DNA of 64,000 nucleotides from Ascidiella aspersa (Eukaryota), in contig OZ004608.1 of the NCBI GenBank assembly GCA_963924565.1, forward strand, positions 27,156,001 to 27,220,000. The letters are read 5' to 3'. Under the pieces are notes generated by a model. It was not told the DNA's origin. It did no database searches and worked only from the letters and a program-made list of their open reading frames with translations. The position numbers were made by a program, and so were the translations under genes. Below, one piece after another: positions 35,248-51,590 of this stretch. How positions within the stretch are numbered: the stretch's first letter is position 1; every line of letters begins with the position of its first letter.

Positions 35248-36326
35248 GTTGTAACCGAACGAAAATTGGGCGTTCAACGAAAGCTTGCAAAATAACACGG
35301 GGAATCACGGCCATGAACCCTGTGGGAAATTAAGTATAATTGTTTTTCTAATAATATTGGAGTAGAAAAAGTCCTATAAAAAGAACTATAATATACGCAT
35401 ATATAGCCATTTTATTGTATTTAGTCATACTAACATGATTTGCTAAAAACGATTGCATTAAATTACCTTAGTTTAAATTATATATTATTTTGAGAAAAAC
35501 ACAAAGGAAACATATTGCGAAAGCTGGTTCACAACGCAGCGTAAAAAAACAATTGAAACTGTAAAACGGGAAAATCGATTATAATAATACAGAGCTAAAT
35601 TTGCGAAATTACCAACAAACTAACAAAAAATCGCGTACACCAAAGTGGTAGTTTTTCAACATTAAACAAAAAAAACTTAAAAATAAAACTAAGGTCAGCT
35701 TTACAGAAAAATAGTATTTATTATTTGTACACCTTTTGCATAAGCGAAAAAATTACACTGTGCTACAAAGGCATAATTACGTATGCAGCAAAAAATATAT
35801 AAAGAAAATATAAGAAAAAAAAAAACGATTCGATATTAGATATCACGGTAGGCGAATAATTTGTAAACATTTTTGCAAAAATAACACAATTTTTTTGCAT
35901 GAATAATTAAAAAAAATTAAATTATGTTGTTAAAAATTGCGCAGAAAGTAACAGCGTATGACATTCTCGGACTTTTTTGCAATTATTCGCCAAAATAACA
36001 TGTAGTTTGACAACCCGATTTACGTAATAAATTTTCGACAACTTGCGTTAACATGTTTAAACAGGGACTGGTTTGTACGGTTGAAGCAATAAAGCAGTTA
36101 AAAACAAACTAGTGGACGGCCTATAGGAATGGCAAAGATGATGTAAAAACAAACGGACTGAAAATAGGCTCAACACTACTGTATTCAACAACAACAAAAA
36201 AGCTAAAAGAAAAAAAAACTTTCTAACCATAACAAGACAGGAATGCTATAATTTACTATACCGATTAAAATTATTAGCGAAAATCGTCCCTATAATCCCT
36301 CCTTCGCCCTTAAAAAACCCTCAACA

Positions 36327-36597
36327 CTAAATCACGTAAAACCGGATCTCCGTTTTCTTGGCATTGTGCCCGTAACCGCGTTTCGACTGGATGAGGAAAG
36401 CGGCCGGCTTATCCAGTTCCCCTTCGTCCAGAACGCTGTCGTTTCGCGACGAAACCATCGAACTGTTGCTCTGTAACCGGCTTAGGGTGCGGCCATGATG
36501 GCTATCGGCGACGTCGTAGTTGTTGTTATTGCTGTTGTTCGTGAATTTTCCGGATCGCGACTTGACGACCCCGCTGTGCTTGTTCGGGGTGTTTAGC
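36327..36597 (-). CDS. Terminal exon of MANBA model: hydrophilic cytoplasmic tail ending ...EIRFYVI
   Basis: A CTGTCAG acceptor joins in phase 2 with the upstream TM exon. The frame is open for ~90 codons and its composition is GC-rich like the other exons. Confidence 0.7.
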
Positions 36598-39500
36598 CTG
36601 ACAGAGTATTTTTTCGTTTTTTTTTCAGTTTGGCAAGCAATTTTTACTTGGCAGCGGATACACACAGTTTTTGCTGACGAATCACACACAAGATAACATG
36701 TTCAGATAAGCAGAAAATAAACAATGTTGGTGCCTAATTTGGCCAAACTGGTTGTAGTTACTTCTTTTAAAAAAATAATTGCACAATTATCTTGTTTCAA
36801 GCCTGAAAAACCCGGAAGTCGAGGAATGTTCTACAGTTACCATTATGGTATAGTCAAATTGGACATTAGACAAGAAAAGCGCATTTAAGTCGTTTGTAAA
36901 ATACCAAATTTCCAGTAAACACCGCCAACGTCGAATGTTTATTTTTTTATAATAGCAAACTATAACTGCCGAGCTTTGAAACATTCATTTAAAACAGGGG
37001 CTCTTAAACTTTTTTTTACCGCGGAACCCGGAAAATTTTAAGGACCGGTGACTTTCAGAAATTTGCTGTTTAAAAAAAAATGTGAAATGAAATGAAGTAA
37101 GTATATTCAGTGCAAAAACGTTTTATTTTTAACTAAAGCCTATTCTTTTCTTTGAAAAATAGATTGCTTAAATATACACTAATAGTTCAATTAGGCCTTC
37201 TTGGGCCCCCTAAAACTAGTCCACGTACCCCCAAGGAATCCATGGACCCCAGTTTAGGAACCCCTGATTTAAATGAAGTAATTGTATTAGTAAACCATTA
37301 CCTGAGAACGAGACACGTGATCTGTACAGCTGCCAGGATGATAAACAGCAAGCCGACCACGGCGAAGGTTAGCTTGGCAGTGACGTCATCTAACCACGTT
37401 TCAGTGCTGATTATATCGGCTGGTGACGTCACTTCCAAATCGTCAGCAGCTGCGGAAAGAAGCACGGGCGTGAGTTGGTTTTGCACGGCCGCTAGTTTTA
37501 TGAATGGAAATACACGCAAATGGAGTTAAAACTAAATAAGGTACCTTAGAACTATGCCAAGCAAAACTAGAATATAAAATATATAAAGAAACTTTATAGT
37601 CTGTCTTTTCTGCAGCGTTATATAAAGCAGTCCACTCCAACCAGTGGGTACCGGTGGGTCGCGAAGCATTTTTAAATGTAAAAGTTTTTTTCATTAGATC
37701 CGAGAAATGATTGCATTATTATTACGTAACATTTATGCAACAATATCACAAATACTTAACAATTAGATGTATTGTTTCGCATTTACTATTTCAGTACGTA
37801 CGCCAGTAGTATAGATGCAGGTTCTATGTAACTTTGTTAGATTGGCCTTACATCATTGTAGTTCGCACAACAAAACTTGCATTAAAAGTGGGTCGCGAAC
37901 TGGAAAAGGTTTGGAAACACTGATATAAAGCATTTGGAAAAAAGTAATTTAAATTAAGTGCATTTGATATGCACTATTCCATCGTGTTGGCATAACTATT
38001 AGTGTTTTGCGTTTTAATGATGAAATTTAACTTCACCTAATTATTTTAGGAATAAAGAACGTTTTTTCCCTAATCTATTTTTTTTCACTTCCAAAGGAAA
38101 GCTAGCTACTGTTAAAAACAGTGATACCTTTGAATCAATGAATAGCAAAATGAGGGCCACTTACTCGCATTAAGGTTCTTGTAAATGTCGGCCAGCGACT
38201 TTATTTGCAAACTGTCCTTTAGTTGTTCAGCATCAACCGGAGTTTTCTCCCAGGAGTGGAAGACGAGTTTTACAGTTGGCTCGTACATCACAAACCCGTT
38301 GCTCGTAAAGCGCCCTATAATAGAGCACAAAGCCGGGTACTGTCAACGCCTTTTTTTGCAAGAGCAGTGGTTTCCAACGTTTTTTGTCCCGTGCACCCTT
38401 TTAGATGATATTCAAATCTAATTCGCCCCTACAAATTTAGTTTGCTAAAATATCGTTTACATTGATATTTTAATTTAATGCTTAGAACAGAAATTAAACT
38501 CTCGATTAAAAACTCAATACCCTCTAATATTCCTATTTGTACTATTTATCATGAACTTTGGTGAAAAATATTTTATTTAAAGAATATATATAAAAATATA
38601 AGAGTCAATGCTTTTAACAATCAGGGGGAATCGATTTTATACGAGCAGTTCTTTTTTTCAGCTGATATATGGCAAATGCAACAATAACACATAGCAGAGA
38701 CAACTAGTAAGAGATTTATATTATAACACAAATCCCCCATTCAAATTACAAAATTCCTCCCTAGTGGGGACCACTGCGCTAGAGCAATTAGCTTGTTAGG
38801 AGCATAATGGTCGGAGATTGCAATTAAACGTAGTAAAACATATCAAAGCCAAAAGAGAAGAGGGTGCCCTTGTACGCGATTTAAAGAAAACACTTTTAAC
38901 ATACAACGTTTGCACATTGTTACCAAAACTTTACGCGCTTTTAAAATTTTTTTTATCTTTATAGCATACTTAAAAATTACTTGTGAATATTTAAAACTAA
39001 AACGATATAAACTCAAAACAGGCAAGTAGGGGACATTTTGCGAACGCGGGTAAACCACCTCTCACCTTTGATCCCGATGGCTTCGATCCAAACAAAGAGG
39101 GCAGGAGCTGTTGTCACAAGATTGATCTGGAACATATTATCTCCAGCCGGAACAACGCTGCTGACCTGAGAGAAAATTAACATTTAAGTGTGTATAGATA
39201 GACAACAATTTACCATCGTACTGTTGCGCCCCCGCCGCGACCTGTGCACTGGGGCTTGGCCCCAGACCCCATACAGCTGCCCGGCGGGACGCAACCGCGC
39301 GAGTTCTTGTTGTTTGCAAAGGTTTCTGGTCAGATATGCTACCTGTCATAAACCACAACTAAAATTCCAATCAAAAGTATATTGTTACAACGAATTAAAA
39401 CGATATCAAATAGCATTAGTGAACGTTATTTTCAAGTTAATGTGAGACAGACAGCCACCGCCTATTGCAGCGACTGTCGGCTAAAACTTCGCAAAAGACT

Positions 39501-42500
39501 TCTCTAGAGAAAAAGCTCAAAGCCGCTAAGAAACGACATGTATATAGCCAATACGTAGGAAGAAAAAGAACACGAAAGTTACGTCATAATTGGTCAATAA
39601 GACTGGCCGGCACTCTAAAACATGGCTAGGCATTACAGCGGCCATTCTAAGGCCAAATTGCAGCGGGAGTCAGACGCCAGCAAAACAAGTGGCTTGTTTT
39701 GCAGAACGTGAGAACACCGCCCGCAAGACTGACAGTTATAGATTACGAGATTAAAGGTTACCAGTCAAGTTTGAAACGAGGCGAACTAAAGCAGAAAAAC
39801 TTAGGAATTTTACACCCAACAATACGGACAACTTTACATCATCAAATATTATATTTTATAACTGAAGAACATATTTGGCAAACGAAAGCTGAAACGCGTA
39901 ATCTAAAACCCTATTTATCACATCGTAAAATCACTTAATGAACTCTAAGATTTGGCTTATGGCAGTTAATCAATTTGGGTGTTTAAGTGTTGAAAAACAC
40001 TTAACACGTACAACACTTATATACTAACAATTACTACTGTAAAATACCAATTTTAATACAATAGGTAAACGTTACAAACTACCCCGGATGACTTTGGGCA
40101 GGACAAGGCGGGTAAAATAACTAGCCTGTGGTGAGGTTCGAACTCATGACCTCGGCCAAACCGGGGCGTTTCATGTTAGAAAATTTAAAGATGATTAAGA
40201 TTAAGGATAGGATTTCGCAAATGGTACGAAATGCCTATTTAACCATACCCCAAAAGCAACGCTTAAATCGATTTGTTTCTTAAACACAAACCTGTATGTG
40301 CGGTTTCTTGAGGCCCTGTATTTCCTTGAAGTTAAGTGGAAAGAGGAAGGCAGGAGTGACGTCTTGGTTGTTTTGCAGCGACACTGTGATGTAGCACAGG
40401 TTCTAAACAGGCGAAAGCATTTGTGATTATTACAGAGCCTTAACATAAACAGGTTACCAAAACGACGACAACGTCATTAATCGGTCAGAATAATTGTTCG
40501 CGTATAGTATTTTAATCTTACTACTTAAATACTGAAACATTCACACACGTGCGTACAACTGCATTTGACTTGTACTTAAATCCTTGGATGAACAGTTGAT
40601 TTCAGTTTTCATACATACATATTATTAAAGTTGATAAAAATACCAAATAGTGGTCCATGGTAACCAATGTGGTACCTTGTATAAAGAGTATCCATCACTG
40701 GTATAAATGGTCCGAAAATGATTAATAATTTAATTTATAATTTATCTTTAAAACACGAACTAGAAATCATTAAAAAATGACGCGCTATTTAAGAAAGGAC
40801 ACGCAACAAAACGTAATCTCAAGGGTTCGCTTCTCGAACAAAAAACAAATATGCAGTAACAATTCCGTTAGCGCGACAATATTACTTGGCACGGAAAGGA
40901 TGAAAAATTCGCAAACCAATAAACAATAGGGGGCACAGCCAATTAATCATTTTTCACATACAGAAATTAAAACCAATAGCACGGCGGCATTGTAGCTAAA
41001 GCGGTCGCGAACCTGATAGGGGCAGTTGCCGTAATGGAGAATCGAACCGATGCTTTCAACCAGCAGCTTGGAGGATCGGTGCGCCGGGATGCTGGCGTTC
41101 GAGGTGTAGCTGCCCAGGACTCCGAATTGCTCCCAGGAGCGCACAGAGACGAGGAGAGAATCGTCGGCGTCTTGGTCGAGGTCGGAGGCGGCGTAGACCG
41201 TTAGTTGAGTGTCGTCGTCGTACGCGATAAGAGCGAGCGGCGCGAAAAAGTCGAGCGCGAAGTAGTGCAGCATCTTCCACTTGCCTCCGTACTCTGTGCA
41301 TTGTTTTAGGTACATGTAAAATGGATACAGGGAATACGGTTAGTGTATTGGAACACAGTATACGTTGTTTTTTTTAGGCAGAACAGTTAATGATAAAGAC
41401 CAGTGCTCTTCAAACTTTTTTCCATGGTGCACCCTTAAGATGTTGTGGTGAACTCATGCACCCTATTTATTTTAAAGGAAAATCTAGGTGAAAAGACATA
41501 TGGAATTCACCTTTCAGATATTAATACTCAACAAAATTACTAAAAGTTAAAAAAAAACGAGGAATATCTTATTTAAGGAATTTTTTGTTGTTGCATGTCG
41601 AGAGGGCATATGCCCATTTAAGTTGTCATGGATTGCTATTTGTGATTATATTTTTCCTAAATCCACACAATAACCATCCCGAACCGGAACCAAACAGGTC
41701 ATTGATTTCGGAAAGGATATGTTGCCCATTTTAATTATGGAAATATCAGAAAAATCGCGCTTTGTGTTAATAATGTTTTATTTTCTGCGCATTGTTTTAG
41801 GTCAGTGGTTCGCAACCTTTTACGGCCTGTGGCACCCCAAAGAAAACATAAAAAGGTTGCAGCACTCCTATTAAAATTTTCGTTGAGTAACCCACCATAA
41901 TTTCAAGTGGTTTACTATAAATAAACGAAACTGGAACAATACAAATAAACTCTGAGCACTGTAGGAATTATGTTTTGTTTTACTCTATCATACACAAAGA
42001 GCGAAAGGCTTCGCAATAATAGCAAAAATAAAATTCCTAAAGATTCCAAAATATCTCGCGGCACCCTTGAGCATTAGAAACCGCAGCGCCCTGGTGTGCC
42101 ATTTTTAATGCTAAAGGGCGCCGATAGGTATTTGGGAATTGGTAAGCTTCTTGATGCAACTATTTTTGTACGGTTAAACACCATTATATGAATTGACATT
42201 TCGTACATGTTTTAAGTTAATGGTGGTGCTCCAGTTGCATTTATAGCACCATTTCGGTATAATAATACAACGAAAATCCCAGTGGGGTGTCGAAAATCAA
42301 TTTTTGTTTTGAGGTGTGCCGTAAGCAATAAAAGGTGGAGAGTTACTGATATAAAGAATACAGGCCTACAGGGGTTCTATACTTACCGGTCGACGACCAA
42401 GTGGGAGCTTGCCAAATGTCGTTTAGCTGCCAGTAGAGGGCGCCCATGGTGTGACCGGCGCCGTCCACAATCTCATTCCGACTGCGTCTGTAGAACTCGG

Positions 42501-45500
42501 TCTGCGCCTTGTAGCAGAGAGACTGCATCACCTGCCAACAGAAACACCTATCGTGGCTTCTATTCAATAAGTCGTTTATGGAAAATTTTGCCTCCCTCTT
42601 CGAACAATGTCTTTTTTATAGCCACAACGCTCATGTGCTTTCTCTGTTAATCTTTAATGTAAAATGATATGAATTATACAGCAAGGGCTTTGTGAAATAA
42701 TAAAATCAGTGTAAAGAGAGCTTAAAATGTAAATGGATGCTAGTAGGGTGTCTTATCACTGAGCACCCTTCTCACCCCTATAGCTTGAAAAAAAAGCATT
42801 TCAGCATAATAGTTGAGGCTTATCATTTGTATTAATTGCCAAGGCCTGCTGAGAAGTATGTATTTATTTAGTTATACGTGCGTATAAAACAACTAAATTG
42901 GAGTCTTACTTCTAACTAGATGGTTTGGGTATAACTTTTTGTTATTTGAATATAAGAGACGGGCCGCATGAAATATGGACTGTTCAACGGTTAATGTAAA
43001 TTGTGAGAGAAATTTAACAGACAATAAAATGTATTGTATAAGACAGACTCCTGCTTAAAATCACATGAATATTTAAACTGTTGAATACAAACAATGCCCT
43101 AACGGCTAACGTATCGGTTTCAATCTGATTTTATAACGCGTTATTTAGTCACGTATATATCTTACCTGAGTTAGGTAGAGCGTATCCTGAAAGACTTGCG
43201 TGCTGTTGCCCACGTCTGGCATGGCGAAATGCATTTTGATCTGGACAGCCATTTGCTGGTTGCCGTCGCCGTGGTGCTGCCGGTGGCTCGACCAATCGGA
43301 GTCCAGCGTCCAATCACGTGCCTCGCTGACGTGTTCTATCGCTTCGAATGATGGCCACGACTGAAATCCGTACTCAGATGCAAACCTTAAAGGCGATTTA
43401 AAGGAGTTGTATAAATCAGTTATTCCAATAACTGATTGGACAGCGATTATTGTATTTCAACATGAACAACAAATGCCTTAAAAATTGCCGTATTTAAGCG
43501 AAAAATTAAAATTATAGACCTAACTCCAAGCCTTGTCATGGCTTTGTCATACACAGTGGGCTTGTTTTCTATTACTTTCAGTCAAACGGTCAAAGGTCAC
43601 TTAGCACATGGGGCCTAGAAATTGTAGTTGTACTTATGGTTACGGCAGTTGGTGTTACTACCTTGTCGCGGTAGGAGCATTAACTTACGACGTGATTATA
43701 CCTAGTTTTAGGAAACTTGGTCCAATCCAAACAGTCGTCCTTGTAGTTATAGTAGTGGACGTCGCCGTACTGGACACTGTACGGGTTGGTCGCTACCCAG
43801 CCCTCATCCGCCGATTCTGCCGCATTGGTCGGACTGGATGACAGGAAGGGTCGGGAGTCGTCCAACGAAAGCACCAGGGTTCGAATGGTATCTTATGTTA
43901 AACAAAGGCACAAAAAACACATTTAAAAGCCAAAGTCTAATATTTCATCGTGAAAACTCAAATTAATAGTATTAGAAAAATGAAGAACTCTCCATCTTTG
44001 CAAGCACACGATAGGTATTTTTTGTTATTACTAACCCGACGTGATTTCTGAGAGCATTTTTCGTATAAAATATGACTTTGAAAAAATTTTAGTTTCAAAC
44101 CCACGTTAGTTTTCTACTGAAATTAGTTTTCGACTGAAACGTAGATTGAATTTTTAAACCTTGGAAAAGCAGTTTACGTTCCAGAAACACAACAAGTGTT
44201 TACTATAAGTATAATATTTCTTGTAAATTTACCAATATACAACTTAACGTAATCCTTCTTGTATCTGTCGAAGTGGTCGGTTGTGTTGTACCAATTTGTG
44301 GCCAGCGCAGCCTCGTTTTCGTTGTTTCCAGCCCAGGCCACTATCGAGGCGTGGTGTTTTAAGCGCCATATTTGGTCGGTGAGTTCCTGCAAATATGCGT
44401 AAGTTCAATAAGTTATCATTGTTGTAAACAAGTCGTTTGGAAAAATTATTTGTACTTAAAGCAAGTGAAGCCCGAGATCAAGTAATTGTTATAGCACGTA
44501 GGATAAATTTTAACAAAAATAAATAAAATTTTCAAGTTGATTCATCGTCTAATTCAGTGCTTCCCAACCAGTGGGTCGCGAAGCATTTCTAACTGTTACA
44601 GTTTTCTATCAGATTGGGCAATTATTGCATTATCATTGCGTAACGTTTGTAACACATTACGTAACAATTAGATGTGTTTTGTCGCATTAAATATTTTAGT
44701 ACGTATGTCAGTAATCATGCAGGTTTTATGTAACCGTTAATCTTATTTCCAATAAGTTGCATTTTAAATTTTTGCTAAACAATTTGTTCATATCTCATTG
44801 TGGATCGTTCAATAAAACTTGTATTAAAAGTGGGTCGCGAACTGAAAAAGGTTGGGAAGCACTGGCCTAGTAGTTGGCTTAATTCTGAATTCAAATCATT
44901 TCACTGAAAAGTTAAATCAGCTTAAGGAAAATTATACAGAAAACTTGAATCAAAGGAAGGTATTTAAAACCGGGTTTAAGAACCCCCTTTCATAGTTAAA
45001 GTTACAACAATGGTTAGATTCACTAAAAAAGTTTGCAACAATTACAACGGCCAATCAGTTAAACAAATATTAACATGGTAAACAGCGCACCGTAGTGTTC
45101 ATTTCTCTCGCTGGTTTAAATTGCAATTCAGCATATTTTAGAATTGCGATTTACGTTAACTCGAGTACGAAGGTCAGCGTAATGATAGCTCCTGCGAGCG
45201 TATTGTAAACAAAATATTAATTATTTTACGCCAACACTGATTGATATTTACATATCAAAATGTTGATTGCAAATATGCACTTTCGGGGTGCTGGTAAGAT
45301 GCTTTTTATCCCTGACTAGGGACGAAAAAAGTAGGAATGTGACAATTTTTCAGATACTGAATAAGAAATTTAATTGCACAATTGCTCGTTATTGCACAAT
45401 TACCTATTGAGTATTGGGTTGTTGAATAAGTAATAATTGAACCTTATTCGGAAAACATATTTTGACAAACCATCAATTACTAAAAACTATTTTAATGCGT

Positions 45501-48500
45501 TTTAAATCTGCATGGCACAGTTTTGTAACAAAAATCTTGATTCAACATTCCTAAAAACAAAACGCATTTAAAAAAATAACTATAAGACGGTTAATATACG
45601 ACTGTAACTTCAACATTTACTTGGAAACTGTCGGGTAATGCGAAATGGCAATAGTCGTGCCAATTTTGTAATAACTCTTAAGTAAAAAAAGCCTATTGGC
45701 ACATACAGTATATATAGATATCTGAATGTATCTAGACACTGGTAAGAAATGCTGAGCTAAGAATATAAGTGGGCTCGATAATGATGCCGAGTTCGAGTTC
45801 CCGTGACCTTTCGCAGTAACCAACCAAAGATAAAACAAATCTAGATACCTGGGTGACGTTGTCAAGAAACTCGTGCGAAGTCGGGTAGAGGGCGCAGGCG
45901 AACATAAAGTCCTGCCAGATCATAATGCCCAGCTCGTCTGCCAGTTGGTAGAAGCGGTCGTCCTCGTATATGCCGCCTCCCCATACGCGCAGCATGTTCA
46001 TGTTCGCCGCGTGGGCCGATGTCAGCAAGTTCTCGTACCTTGGTTATACAGCGATGTTGTTTATTTGAAGTGTGTGTGGCCTGTGTAAGGTTGCGTCAAG
46101 ATATTTCGTTTTTTTTTGTAACGCAGTAACAGTGCATCAAACAACAAACGAATACCATAAGCAGATTTAACTAGGACTTCATTTTATTTTGACTTCATTT
46201 TATTTTTATTATTCGATTTAACTATGACTTTATTTTTATTTTTTACTGACAGGCAGAGTAACTAACAGGCAGCCTTGGATAACTAGAAAATTCTAGTTTT
46301 CTAATTCTATGAATTAGAGCAAAATGCAACTAATTCTAATTCTAATTCTTGTTCTAATCTAATTCGGATTTTACCAAAAATGCTACTTTGTCCAACGGAA
46401 TTTTTATTTTCTCAGTCGAAAACAAACAATTTGAAAAAAAAACTTATGGTCGAAACGATTTGTTCGGATTAACTTTACACCCTAAATGCCAAAACCTTAA
46501 AAAATAGCAGAGAAATATTTGCAATTTACAATATGAATAGAACAAATCTGATATAAACTAAGTTGATGGTGAATAATTTAATGTACATCTAGTTTAAATT
46601 CCAGTTTATACTTAGTTTTTTTCAAGAATTCAGTAATTCTAAAATAAATTAATTCGAGAAAACTCAAAATGATCTAATTCTAATTCTAATCTAGTTTTAA
46701 AAAACCGAAAAAAATTAATTTTAATTCTAATCGAATTGTAAAGCTAAAATAAATCTAGTTGTCAAGTGTGCTAACAGGGGGTTCCTTTCTTTGTTCTGAT
46801 ATCATTTAAAACCGATTCAAATTACTAGGCCTACGAGGGGTCCAGCGCACAGCTGATTATCTTTATACAATTTGAAGCTTTTCCATTTATTTTAAATGCT
46901 TTTGCTGGGAGCGATTAAATAGTAAGTTAACTTTTTATTAATTGATAACAAATTAACAGAGAGGTGGCAATACACAAAATTCACCTTTCGTATGTGATAC
47001 GATTTTTAAACGCGTCGGCCGGAATCCAGTTGGCCCCCTTTGCCCACACGATGGCGCCGTTGATCCTAAAATAGAAGCTTAAACCCGGAGAGCCTTCGAT
47101 TTTCTCCTGAACCAGTTCAACCTTCCGAAATCCAAACCTTTATGACAAAATAATTGACTGTTTTAAAACATTTTTATTACCTTTTTAATCTTCCTTATCG
47201 GCACGCATAATTTAAGATTGTGTTAAAAATGTGCTTGTGCTACTTGTGCTGTTCCGACGATGATGACAAGCAATTGCGATAATTTGCAAATCAATCTTAA
47301 CTTTGCGTGCTTAAAACAAACTGTAATGATTTTTCATGCTATGGCACTGATCACTATTGTTTTTTATGTTGTATCAGAACCGTTAAAATTTACTGAAGCC
47401 GTGTTCATAGCCCCTAAACTAAATTATCGCAATTGTATGCATGACTGTAAAAAATCAAATTAAATACTGCGCTTTTGTAAAACTATCATAAAGTTTTGCA
47501 AAATCTGTTGGAGAAACAGCCCAAAGTCTTCAAACTAAATTATTGCAATTATTTCCGTTAACTTAAAGAATTTAAACTATATTTTTCTTCTTCGGAGAAA
47601 TCACATATGCATAGAGTTTTGCATATCATGTAAATAGCTAATTTTAGAGGCCAGCCAACCCGAATATATTAAACACGCCAATCTTGTTGCTCACCTGACA
47701 CTCAACCGAAATCACGCCATCTGATTGATTGTCACTACTCACGTTCGAGGACATTACAAAAAATTGAAACTGGAATACGTCTGTGTTTTAAATGCCACGC
47801 CAGTCGGTTGAAAAACGCTTTGTTATACTTCGCATCAGGGTCAGAATATTTTGTTTCTTTCATAAGCTAGGCATAAACCTAATTCATATCCGCTTGACAC
47901 TGTTATTGTCAAGCTTTTTTCCAAGTCAAGACTCTTAAGCTCACAGTTTTGTTAAAACAGTGTACAATTGAAAAAACAAGTAGTCCATCTATTTTTTTTA
48001 TCATGTTAAGTTAAGGCAGGGGTTCTTAAACTTTTTTTTACCGCGGACCCCTAAACATTTTTTTGCCTCACGTCGACCACGGTAGGTAAAAGATTTAAAA
48101 AAATGACGTCATAAATTAACGTCATAATGCAAATAGACGTTATAAATCAGCTGATTTCAGTCTAAAAACTGAGAAAGTGAAATGAAGTCTAAATACAGTT
48201 AAGTCACTGTTTTCAAATGACTTGAATTGATCAAACAAATTACTTGACTTGGGCTTAGGCTTTTTTGGCAAATGCATTACCTTTACGGTTGTCAATTAAA
48301 AACGTTTTTTTTGTAAAAAAATGGGTTATTTACCTCAATTTCTAGACATAAAAAAGTTTGACTGTTAGTTGTTTCGTTCTATATGTTTGCTATGTAAAAC
48401 AATTTTTTTTCTGGCGTCTCGCGAATCCCAGTAATGTATATGGTGTATGTCTTTGTCATTTCGTTTAAATCGGTTAAGCCAAAGGCGCGGTGTCTCCAAT

Positions 48501-51500
48501 AGGAGCCGTGAAACAGACCCGTATTTTGACGTAACTTTGTGGCTTCATCGCTCATTTTTTTATGGCTTCCACAAACTAAAATCTGGATCCGCCACTGACT
48601 GTACATTGTGATTACTACTGGCACAATCATCGCCTTCGTTACAGTGTAGTAAAGGTTTGCAAATCTTAACAAATTGAAAAATTACCGCCCCCCCCTCCAA
48701 ATAAAATTCTTAGACCCAGCCCCTCAGATACAGTCACATGTTGTTTTAAACTTAAAGAAAACGTCTGTTTATAAAAACATATTACACATGCGAAGTTGGA
48801 TTAATGGAAAGTGCTACAATGAAACTTGGGTATTATTTGCTTGCTTAAAAAGAAGGGGTTAACTTGATGAGTCAACCACTGATATATTTATTGCATAATT
48901 TACTAACCTAAAATGTTTGCTACTCTTGGCAAGACTTGTTGCCGAAATAAATTCCACCGAAATGTTGTAAAGAACAGGAGATCCATACCCATTTGGCCAC
49001 CATGGCTTGAACGGAACCTGAATATATGCAAAATGAAGAATACATTTAACATAAACAGTAAACACAGTTACCCATTTTAAAACGTTGATTTTTATTTTCA
49101 AGTTAAATTTATTATTTGATTGACCCCAATAATTTGGCACAGAATAAGTATATATATAAAAAAATATAATTTTTACCGGTTTTAGAAAATATTACCTTGG
49201 TCATGTCAATAGCCAAGTGAAGGTAACTATCTCCATGTGAGGTATTTGTCATCGTTACATTGCTGAAATGTGTATTGACCCCAAGTTCTTCTATTGTAAC
49301 TGTCACATTGCCACTATTTGAAGGCTTTTTACTGTTGTCCGCAACTTGAAACTTTAGGTCAAATACCAGTTGTTTTTTGTCTAAATAAATGTAAGGATAA
49401 ATTAGTTGTTAATATTATATAAATTTAATTTGGCAAAAAATAAAAAATACAGGCAAAAAAATGAAAATAAATTCTTTTACAAATCATAAGGCATATGTAA
49501 TACACAGCCAAAATTTGGTGCTAGAAGCAGACATTTAAAGGGAAAGCTATAAGTCAAATTTAGGCTAAGACGGATAGAACCTCCATAGCCTTATAGTTAA
49601 AGTAGTAAAACATTCAGGTTGATTGTAATAATTTTGTTGGGTGTATTTCCTTAAATCTAGTACAAACGCTAAAATTTTACTTTTTAATTTTATTTAACAA
49701 CTAAAATACACATTAAAATTTCCCTAGAAAAAGTGCAACCATGTATATCCAAATCCAAACATACCCCAGTCAAAAGCAGCTGAAGCGTGTGACAAGAATG
49801 GACTGGAGTAGGCTTCCAGGTAGACAGGCATCCAAATACCCTGAGTTGCAAATGCTGGACCCCAGTCCCAGCTGAATGAACATTGCTCCTTTCTGCAAAT
49901 TGTAATAGGCTATGTGTTAGGACTCCAGCCATAACACAGAAATAAGAGCAACATCAACATTGGACTAAAACACAGTTCGGAATAAGACCAAAATAGGACC
50001 AATACCAATACCGTCTAAATTGGAAAAGTCATGAACAATTTGAAATAAGACATAAATGGCCAGAATCAGGCCTAAACAACACTTTAACTAACCCCAAACC
50101 CCATTTCTAAGTACATTACTCCCCTAATAATTTCAACCCTAACCTTTTTTCTAACCCCACAAAAAACCTAAAACAGAGCACAAAAATCCTGTGCCAAAAC
50201 AGCGGTGCCCCAATGGTACCATTCAAACTAGGGCCCATACATCGACACCCCCGATAGTCCCATACCATCTCCAAACATTTTAGCCTTATTCCAACAGGTT
50301 TATGTTTTTTTCAGGCGATTAAGTTCTTATTCTGTTGTGGATATTAGGACATATTTGTCTTTATTATGTTGTTGGACCTAATACTATGGTTTTACAGATT
50401 TTTCTGTTTTAGGTATCATTGCTCTTTAGGTCTTATTGTGTGTTACCATGAAAATCTTTGTTAATGTGCATCAGAATACAACAAAGGCAAGAGTGGAAAC
50501 AAACATAAACCTTATAAGATTAACATGGCAAATTCCCTGCTGTACATCCGGTGGGCAGTTAGGTGGGATAGAGTAAGGCTGCTTCATAACTTGGTTGCTT
50601 GCAACTGTAATTGCAGACTCAAAAGCAACTTCCAGCATGTTGTATGTTGGCTGGAGAATTCCACTCACATTAAACCGCTGCACAAAACAAAAAACTTGTA
50701 ATTATACTAAATCACAGTGCTGTAATGACTTAAGTAAATGTCTCGACTTAGGTGCAATTAAAGCACTGATTTTAAATGACTTGGGTTGGAATAAAGTGTT
50801 TTCATTAAGCAATTTTCATTATAAAATTGGACCATTTATCTTCATTTTGCACATTGAACAATTTGCTTGCTACATGTTGTGTTTTTGTTGTTTTTTACTT
50901 GAGTTTGTTATTAATTTAAAATGACTTGACTTAAGTTATTCACAAATGACTTGACTGGGATTTAGGTTATAGGTCAATTCATTAAAAAATACTCAATGGT
51001 ATGCGACCAGAAAAGTTGAGAATCATTGTTTTAAAGCATAAACTTACATAGGCAACAAACATATCATGAGTCCTGCCAATAAGCTTTCCATTTAAGGATA
51101 CATTTGCAAAAGTGTCCACACCCTCAAAGACAAGCCAGTGCTCCTGTGCTGAAAGAAACTCCCCAGAAACACCAAATGTCCTGGAGTATTTCCAAGAACT
51201 TTGTGCTATCCACCTTAAATTGAGGTCATTGAAACCATAGTACGGATCCTGTCGGATAAAATGGTCAAAAAACTAATAAATGTTTTGGTAAGAATAGGCG
51301 GTGATAGTTTTGGTGTATTGAATACTTGGCAGCAATGCACATCATTACTTACTTAGACAGCAAGTATACACATTTAAATTAAAAATCCATACTTGTGTTG
51401 GGCTTTTTCCTTGCATCCAGTCGGTATGTACACATCCAGGAACATTGGTGTTCTGAAGTTGAATGACAACATTCGAGGATGGCTTTGTACCCACTGCAGT

Positions 51501-51590
51501 CCATGTTGTGCCACCTAAATCCTGGCGGATTAAACTTCCCTCGCTTGTAGCTTTACAAAGCAAAATATAAGCTAAATACAGCCAGATCAT
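36327..51590 (-). CDS. MANBA: Beta-mannosidase (GH2), ~18 coding exons, with C-terminal TM and cytoplasmic extension
   Basis: Signal peptide [12 protein letters not shown], then [80 protein letters not shown] (acid/base), [13 protein letters not shown] (nucleophile), [37 protein letters not shown] and SLADIY, in the order expected for MANBA. Confidence 0.96.
36995..37266. mobile_element. hAT-like MITE
   Basis: CAGGGGCTCTTAAACT...AGTTTAGGAACCCCTG; flanks ATTTAAAA / ATTTAAAT. Confidence 0.8.
37302..37491 (-). CDS. MANBA model exon encoding stalk plus transmembrane helix
   Basis: Encodes [23 protein letters not shown]. The phase-1 acceptor matches the donor at 38164, and a GTAATG donor is at 37301. 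Confidence 0.75.
37628..37922. mobile_element. hAT-like MITE
   Basis: Same family as 16932-17230; perfect TSD ATATAAAG. Confidence 0.85.
40074..40170 (-). repeat. Possible tRNA-derived SINE fragment
   Basis: A B-box-like GAGTTCGAACC sits in the T-arm-like hairpin GAGGTCATGAGTTCGAACCTCAC. No A-box or cloverleaf was found. Confidence 0.35.
44555..44864. mobile_element. hAT-like MITE
   Basis: Perfect TIRs CAGTGCTTCCCAACC / GGTTGGGAAGCACTG; same family as 16932-17230. Confidence 0.85.
46270..46770. repeat. Repeat element with AATTCT arrays
   Basis: TAATTCTAATTCTAAT clusters lie near both ends, with imperfect inverted ends (GATAACTAGA / TCTAGTTGTC). Confidence 0.55.

Follow-up and report, generated by a model that had tools for sequence, protein, structure and literature searches.

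The minus strand of a 64-kb window of the Ascidiella aspersa genome (contig OZ004608.1, positions 27,156,001 to 27,220,000; coordinates below count from the first letter of this stretch of 64,000 nucleotides (nt)) carries a complete animal GH2 beta-mannosidase (MANBA) gene, which runs from an ATG at 51590 to a poly(A) signal at 35416. Recognisable MANBA exon sequences occur in stop-to-stop open reading frames (ORFs) from 51614 down to 38115. They are followed by two extra coding exons that are predicted to place a stalk, a transmembrane (TM) helix and a cytoplasmic tail at the end of the enzyme, which in its characterised forms is normally soluble and lysosomal. The features discussed are as follows, with a slash at each splice boundary given in letters; X1 is a DNA data set, and X5 and X3 are RNA data sets.

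38165..51590, minus strand: catalytic part of the GH2 beta-mannosidase gene, about 15 coding exons (ORFs, Pfam, tblastn, alignments to 6ddt)
39066..39168, minus strand: penultimate catalytic exon, first half of the last Ig-like domain (joint 39066->38314; PF17753 at 21.2 bits, just below the cut-off)
38165..38314, minus strand: last catalytic exon, without a stop codon, ending in phase 1 at the donor A/GTAAGT (PF17753 at 26 bits)
37450..38164, minus strand: intron of 715 nt, GT..AG, holding the unused-looking acceptor 37491, a read-through stop at 38114-38112, ATTAAA at 38018 and a high-copy repeat at about 37712-37979
37373..37449, minus strand: stalk part of the TM exon, a split Thr codon and 25 residues, net charge -6 (acceptor ...ttctttccgcag/C)
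37304..37372, minus strand: predicted TM helix of 23 residues (19-residue Kyte-Doolittle means 2.3-2.82; X1 DNA depth 39.1)
36598..37301, minus strand: intron of 704 nt, GT..AG, holding a very high-copy repeat at about 36908-37291 (joint 36596/37301, cut +1)
36330..36597, minus strand: coding part of the tail exon, 89 whole codons and a split Arg, giving a 90-residue tail (X5 depth 4.3-5.8)
36327..36329, minus strand: stop codon TAG in the terminal exon (from the sequence)
35390..36326, minus strand: 3' untranslated region (UTR) of about 0.9 kb, with AATAAA at 35416-35411 (X5 depth, X3 contigs, poly(A)-signal scan)

We searched the catalytic part exon by exon, using separate exons as queries. 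Pfam families (Glyco_hydro_2_N2, Mannosidase_ig and Ig_mannosidase) were matched in four of the eight exon ORFs submitted. The GH2 N-terminal sugar-binding-like domain (Glyco_hydro_2_N2, PF22666) was found with an E value of 1.8e-23 in the exon ORF at 50985-51272, and the C-terminal domains Mannosidase_ig (PF17786, 24.6 bits) and Ig_mannosidase (PF17753, 26 bits) both scored above their cut-offs; the TM ORF, the tail ORF and two barrel exon ORFs among the eight matched no Pfam family. For the two barrel exons, alignment to the solved structure of beta-mannosidase, 6ddt, gives E values of 3.4e-24 and 7.2e-12 (6ddt and 6ddu are presumably structures of the mouse enzyme). Both catalytic motifs, NNENE and SEYG, are identical to those of 6ddt in the alignment, in agreement with a preliminary description of this DNA that had called them intact, and we take their glutamates to be the acid/base and the nucleophile. 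A full-length MANBA protein from the database aligns in 12 tblastn high-scoring segment pairs, with 54.3% identity over 722 residues. In tblastn the gene most resembles proteins of vertebrates, amphioxus and echinoderms (about 53-55%), insect proteins being more distant. The GH2 beta-mannosidase is intact in sequence and closest to 6ddt, and is putatively active. The ATG at 51590-51588 is followed by an 11-residue hydrophobic run, and we estimate the whole protein at about 1,020 residues.

The joints of the extra exons were established from RNA aligned to positions 35300-39300, using one raw-read run with the same species label (X5), of which about 6% was read, and three contig runs. X5 belongs to one study and X3 to another; a joint supported by fewer than three reads is given solely where a contig shows it. 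The constitutive joint between the last two catalytic exons, 39066->38314, is crossed by two X5 reads and an X3 contig. The joints into the TM exon (38165->37449) and from there into the tail exon (37302->36597) are crossed by three and two X5 reads, respectively, and each by the X3 contig, such that by X5 counts the junctions into the extra exons are supported as well as the constitutive one. A single spliced X3 contig of 2336 nt carries all three minus-strand GT..AG joints; it also spans 36033-36596, includes the piece 39065-39168 and extends upstream of 39168. The first mate lies on the plus strand in all X5 exon reads, which fits a stranded library of minus-strand RNA. Read depth in X5 is 8.54 in the TM bin, which is wholly exonic, and 4.3-5.8 along the tail; bins that the last catalytic exon fills in part show 4.19 and 2.09. 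The depth continues at 5.7-9.8 through the 3' UTR down to the bin 35434-35567 and then falls to 0.42 in 35300-35433, while X3 contigs reach 35356. The two junction phases, 1 and 2, keep one open frame as far as the TAG at 36329-36327. Within the intron beyond the donor at 38165 the X5 depth is 0.19 (37980-38113) against 4.19 in the adjoining exon bin, and read-through past 38165 amounts to at most a few per cent in the samples examined. On this evidence it is highly probable that the anchored layout is real and is the main isoform of MANBA mRNA.

These data bear out most of the gene model in the preliminary description, which had the reading frame continue past SLADIY, through a phase 1 donor at 38165 and then a phase 2 joint from 37302 to 36597, to a tail ending in FYVI; they also place the two downstream exons in the MANBA transcript. 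One splice site has to be moved. The description had put the first acceptor at 37491 and judged it weak; the RNA places it 42 nt (14 codons) further in, at 37449 and in the same frame, and this acceptor has a strong pyrimidine tract (...gcttctttccgcag/CTGCTG). An X5 depth of 1.83 in the bin 37444-37577 may come from occasional splicing to 37491, or from a little RNA that is unspliced. The TM-exon donor at 37302 is GTAATG, in phase 2, and the tail-exon acceptor at 36597 is used even though the stretch before it is A-rich and offers hardly any pyrimidine tract (aaaaaacgaaaaaatactctgtcag). The same description had suggested that read-through of the 38165 donor would give a soluble form ending ...QRYHCF: the ORF exists, running for 17 codons to that ending before a stop, and the intron depths given above speak against the isoform.

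The shift of the acceptor shortens the acidic stretch between DIY and the helix to 31 residues, instead of the stalk of about 40 proposed earlier, and leaves the 23-residue hydrophobic helix as described. The codon split across 38165/37449 encodes Thr, and this residue forms an N-x-T sequon together with the final two residues of the catalytic exon, just beyond the last Ig-like domain. Splicing to 37491 would yield the same Thr. The best 19-residue Kyte-Doolittle mean of the helix segment is 2.82, a TM segment being expected above about 1.6. The tail that follows is rich in Ser and Asn (13 Ser and 11 Asn in 89 residues, or 27% together), is basic close to the membrane and ends in RFYVI; its net charge is +5 overall and +4 over the first 20 residues, to which the split Arg adds. 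With a stalk at -6 and the start of the tail at +4, the positive-inside rule fits an N-out/C-in orientation. We infer that the product is a type I single-pass membrane protein, in which a signal peptide, the GH2 ectodomain, the stalk, the helix and a probably disordered cytoplasmic tail of 90 residues would follow one another. A glycosylphosphatidylinositol signal was ruled out, 90 hydrophilic residues coming after the helix. A scan of the 89 exon-encoded residues of the tail, which in the preliminary description would sort the protein, detected no YxxPhi, [DE]xxxL[LI], DxxLL, NPxY or KKxx motif and no class I PDZ end; what it matched were two CK2-type sites and a class II-like end, YVI. The preliminary description had likened FYVI to a class II PDZ ligand, and the end does have the two hydrophobic positions (0 and -2) of that pattern, making YVI-COOH a putative ligand. 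The pattern is weak, though, and by our estimate about one tail in ten would carry it by chance.

We compared this C-terminus with those of other MANBA proteins and loci, all of them distant relatives. A search of 1.84 billion representative sequences with the 93-residue exon at 41291-41013 gave 95 matches, the closest of which is a 149-residue fragment with 53% identity; one shark protein is among the six closest fragments. A profile built from nine full-length matches retrieved 7953 of 8000 candidate proteins at E <= 1e-30, and vertebrates make up most of the best 120 of these 7953. C-termini were compared in 209 MANBA proteins, 145 of which have the conserved NGF-type motif in their last 120 residues. 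No hydrophobic segment past the last domain (19-residue window of at least 1.6) occurs in any of these 145 proteins, where the maximum is 1.15. After the NGF-type motif 142 of them have at most 49 residues, and three (two decapod proteins and one fragment) have 63-90; the Ascidiella gene has about 181, and its best window reaches 2.82. Of the remaining 64 proteins, which are short fragments or motif-less, the eight with at least 300 residues likewise have no hydrophobic C-terminus (Kyte-Doolittle values up to 1.46). As the preliminary description had stated for the human protein, many mammalian entries end in ...SLTDIY, and the 6ddt chain ends in ...SLTDTY, which aligns to SLADIY. One of the proteins, P0205, is filed at NCBI as 'perforin 1 [Sarotherodon galilaeus]'; by score, Pfam domains and C-terminus it is a full-length beta-mannosidase, and the name is probably an error.

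Genomic loci give the same picture. A metagenome scan with the exon 41291-41013 found 34 host-type (invertebrate) loci with introns, some of them near-duplicates. The last catalytic exon lies on the contig in 11, the other 23 ending before it, and all 11 have a genomic stop after the conserved end, at a distance of 0 codons in four loci, 1 in three, 2 in three and 12 in one. In tblastn against the 34 loci, the TM and tail exons matched nothing better than E 0.37 and 0.91, and those matches were in the wrong place or on the wrong strand. Our search of the full-text literature, by titles and abstracts, turned up no membrane-anchored animal MANBA. In PMC4006722 the legends of other alignments state that TMHMM segments are underlined; the legend of the human-fly MANBA alignment (Figure S7) mentions none. 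The architecture thus appears to be new for a well-known enzyme, and has been seen so far in one species. Within that species the tail has one synonymous and two non-synonymous polymorphisms and the last catalytic exon has two of each, although these are few sites. The non-synonymous changes in the tail (36421 and 36505) are Gly to Glu in X5 and Asp to Val in X3, and those in the last catalytic exon (38225 and 38227) are Gln to Lys and Glu to Gly, both in X5. The X5 reads are mostly 95-99% like the window, indicating that the RNA is from a different strain or population.

MANBA is a single-locus gene in the 308-Mb assembly, where this locus is the only one matched by either of two catalytic exons or by the Ig_mannosidase family; a second, soluble MANBA gene was looked for with these three probes and none was found. 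The TM and tail exons are likewise unique in the assembly. Their capture from a paralogue was considered and rejected, there being no second copy of the tail in the genome and, for the TM exon, just one other match, a chance one (E 9.98). Neither are they an exonised repeat: their X1 DNA depths of 39.1 and 39.6 are those of single-copy sequence, whereas repeats in the neighbouring introns reach 6,600-40,000, with a depth of up to 39961 in the repeat at 36908-37291 against 39.6 for single-copy sequence. The repeats at 36908-37291, 37712-37979 and 39186-39300, which show X1 word depths of 4,000-40,000 and RNA on both strands, look like short dispersed elements of the miniature inverted-repeat transposable element (MITE) kind. 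The edge of one intron repeat lies some 10 nt from the donor of the TM exon.

In the mechanism we propose, the normal mRNA of this single beta-mannosidase gene would encode a type I membrane protein with its GH2 ectodomain in the lumen or outside the cell. The anchored protein would pass through the secretory and endocytic pathways to reach endosomes and lysosomes, and there the enzyme might stay tethered to the limiting membrane or be freed by a cut in the stalk, acting on the Man-beta-1,4-GlcNAc core that remains from N-glycan breakdown. We favour a lysosomal destination since there is no other gene from which the lysosomes could obtain a beta-mannosidase. That the anchored enzyme reaches endosomes or lysosomes and acts there, tethered or released, is by analogy a serious possibility, which we put just short of an even chance. 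A bolder version holds that the sole beta-mannosidase has become an obligate single-pass membrane protein, through the loss of its stop and the gain of two exons, and is sorted by a lineage-specific tail and not as mannose 6-phosphate cargo; this we regard as possible, if on the unlikely side. The idea that the anchor substitutes for a missing mannose 6-phosphate system found no support, since the genome contains both matches to Stealth_CR2 (PF11380; 23 exon-level matches above the cut-off, at several loci and some in tandem) and CIMR repeats:

C9:4.69-4.73 Mb, C3:10.08-10.17 Mb, C6:27.78-27.80 Mb, C2:17.39 Mb, C4:32.77 Mb and C9:10.38 Mb: Stealth_CR2 loci (exon matches)
C7:30155421-30175893: nine CIMR repeats on one strand, about 20 kb

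The former suggest an expanded family of Stealth-domain (GlcNAc-1-phosphotransferase-like) genes, and the latter locus is probably a cation-independent mannose-6-phosphate-receptor-like gene.

Three other explanations of the same transcript have to be weighed. The anchored enzyme could, as the preliminary description had suggested, stay at the plasma membrane, for instance in a digestive epithelium, where a scaffold would bind its hydrophobic C-terminus and it would act as an ecto-beta-mannosidase on extracellular or dietary beta-mannosides, much like the glycosidases of the brush border that are anchored at their C-terminus. The 23-residue helix and a tail free of endocytic and lysosomal motifs fit default delivery to the surface, the YVI end matches the class II PDZ pattern, and an annelid beta-mannosidase appears among the putative digestive enzymes predicted to be extracellular in PMC11083476. 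This is the only MANBA gene, however, and if it acted purely as an ecto-enzyme, no beta-mannosidase would be available for N-glycan breakdown in lysosomes unless part of the protein were internalised; the PDZ pattern, moreover, amounts to two constrained positions seen in one species. We therefore hold surface retention to be unlikely, while keeping it in view. A second alternative is that the gene makes two isoforms: a soluble lysosomal form, produced by read-through to ...QRYHCF and polyadenylation within the intron past 38165, would do the housekeeping work of most tissues, and the anchored form would be tissue-specific. The read-through frame does close after 17 codons, with an ATTAAA about 95 nt beyond at 38018, and the RNA examined is limited to two data sets of unspecified tissue. 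What makes this account improbable is that the X5 depth all but vanishes past the donor (0.19 in 37980-38113), that molecule ends form no cluster in 35300-39300, and that the X3 assembly gave the spliced form.

It is also conceivable that the TM and tail exons are a separate small gene for a membrane protein, joined to MANBA by read-through splicing in a conjoined or aberrant transcript that yields no stable protein. The tail, which has no relatives and a low-complexity make-up, and the poor pyrimidine tract at its acceptor would suit such an origin. The last catalytic exon lacks a stop, however, unlike all 11 other genomic MANBA loci, and MANBA therefore depends on the TM and tail exons for a proper end. 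No Met occurs in the TM-exon ORF, and in the 715-nt intron, two-stranded repeat signal aside, no one-stranded RNA coverage marks another first exon. The junction counts, too, equal that of the constitutive junction. Because the gene has no other stop, we rate this as the least likely of the three, and very improbable.

Several observations weigh against a genuinely anchored and lysosomal beta-mannosidase. Junction support is thin, at two to three X5 reads each, and the two runs are of unknown tissue; the architecture is read from DNA and RNA, and the N-terminal signal peptide is a putative one, assigned by eye. The tail is without every canonical lysosomal or endocytic motif scanned, which weakens a route like that of acid phosphatase, and with Stealth_CR2 and CIMR genes in the genome a soluble mannose 6-phosphate route probably exists, so that an anchor is not obviously needed. 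Searches with the tail lend no support to its conservation: a metagenome scan returned 588 pattern matches and no relatives, the ESM Atlas gave no usable match, and a search for homologues among proteins of 49-156 residues was blank, although the last-catalytic-exon control was equally blank and makes that search uninformative, and blanks of this kind cannot show absence. The tail polymorphisms, at few sites, give no sign of purifying selection.

Soluble lysosomal hydrolases are the standard cargo of receptor-mediated sorting, and to our knowledge very few lysosomal hydrolases are made as membrane proteins. A beta-mannosidase that is anchored and encoded by a sole gene would show the sorting mode of a core catabolic enzyme changing by simple exon gain, and would offer a natural test case for how a tail without motifs reaches or avoids lysosomes. 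If the bolder version of our proposal were true, it would provide a natural case of a soluble lysosomal hydrolase that changed its mode of sorting with the mannose 6-phosphate machinery still there, and the membrane-bound enzyme might be regulated, or held at the surface or at the phagosomal membrane, through its tail. There are consequences for annotation as well: pipelines that expect a stop at ...SL.D.Y would truncate the gene, and a MANBA of this kind would escape family surveys from which TM proteins are filtered. Such a filter was used in the GH2-wide survey PMC12243196, where TM-containing proteins were removed in the secretion-signal analysis. The practical weight of the finding is modest until conservation and localisation are established.

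The closest known system is the vertebrate lysosomal MANBA represented by 6ddt, with which the Ascidiella protein shares the order of domains, the intact motifs and the ...SL.D.Y end of the last Ig-like domain. Vertebrate MANBA ends at this point or within a few residues of it, whereas the Ascidiella gene adds the TM helix and the 90-residue tail. Lineage-specific additions at this position occur elsewhere, in the decapod proteins P0131 (Petrolisthes manimaculis) and P0034, which carry about 30 residues after ...SLTDT that are alike in both. These are hydrophilic and contain no TM segment (Kyte-Doolittle values of at most 0.72), unlike the Ascidiella extension, and their sequence does not resemble the Ascidiella tail.

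For the layout as a whole we have to turn to other enzyme families. Brush-border lactase-phlorizin hydrolase and the Klotho-type glycosidases, which are type I ecto-glycosidases, likewise have a large ectodomain that is anchored by one C-terminal membrane pass and continues into a cytoplasmic tail; they differ in belonging to GH1 instead of GH2, in their short tails and in their digestive or signalling roles. Mammalian lysosomal acid phosphatase (ACP2/LAP) is a luminal hydrolase that ends in one TM helix and a tail on the cytoplasmic side, the same layout as that predicted for the Ascidiella protein, and is made as a membrane precursor that is released by a proteolytic cut. Its fold is unrelated and it depends on a tyrosine-based signal in a short tail, whereas the Ascidiella tail, at 90 residues, lacks any YxxPhi. 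This enzyme, for which Braun 1989 and Peters 1990 are said to be the sources, is the closest precedent we have for a lysosomal enzyme that is anchored although its class is otherwise soluble.

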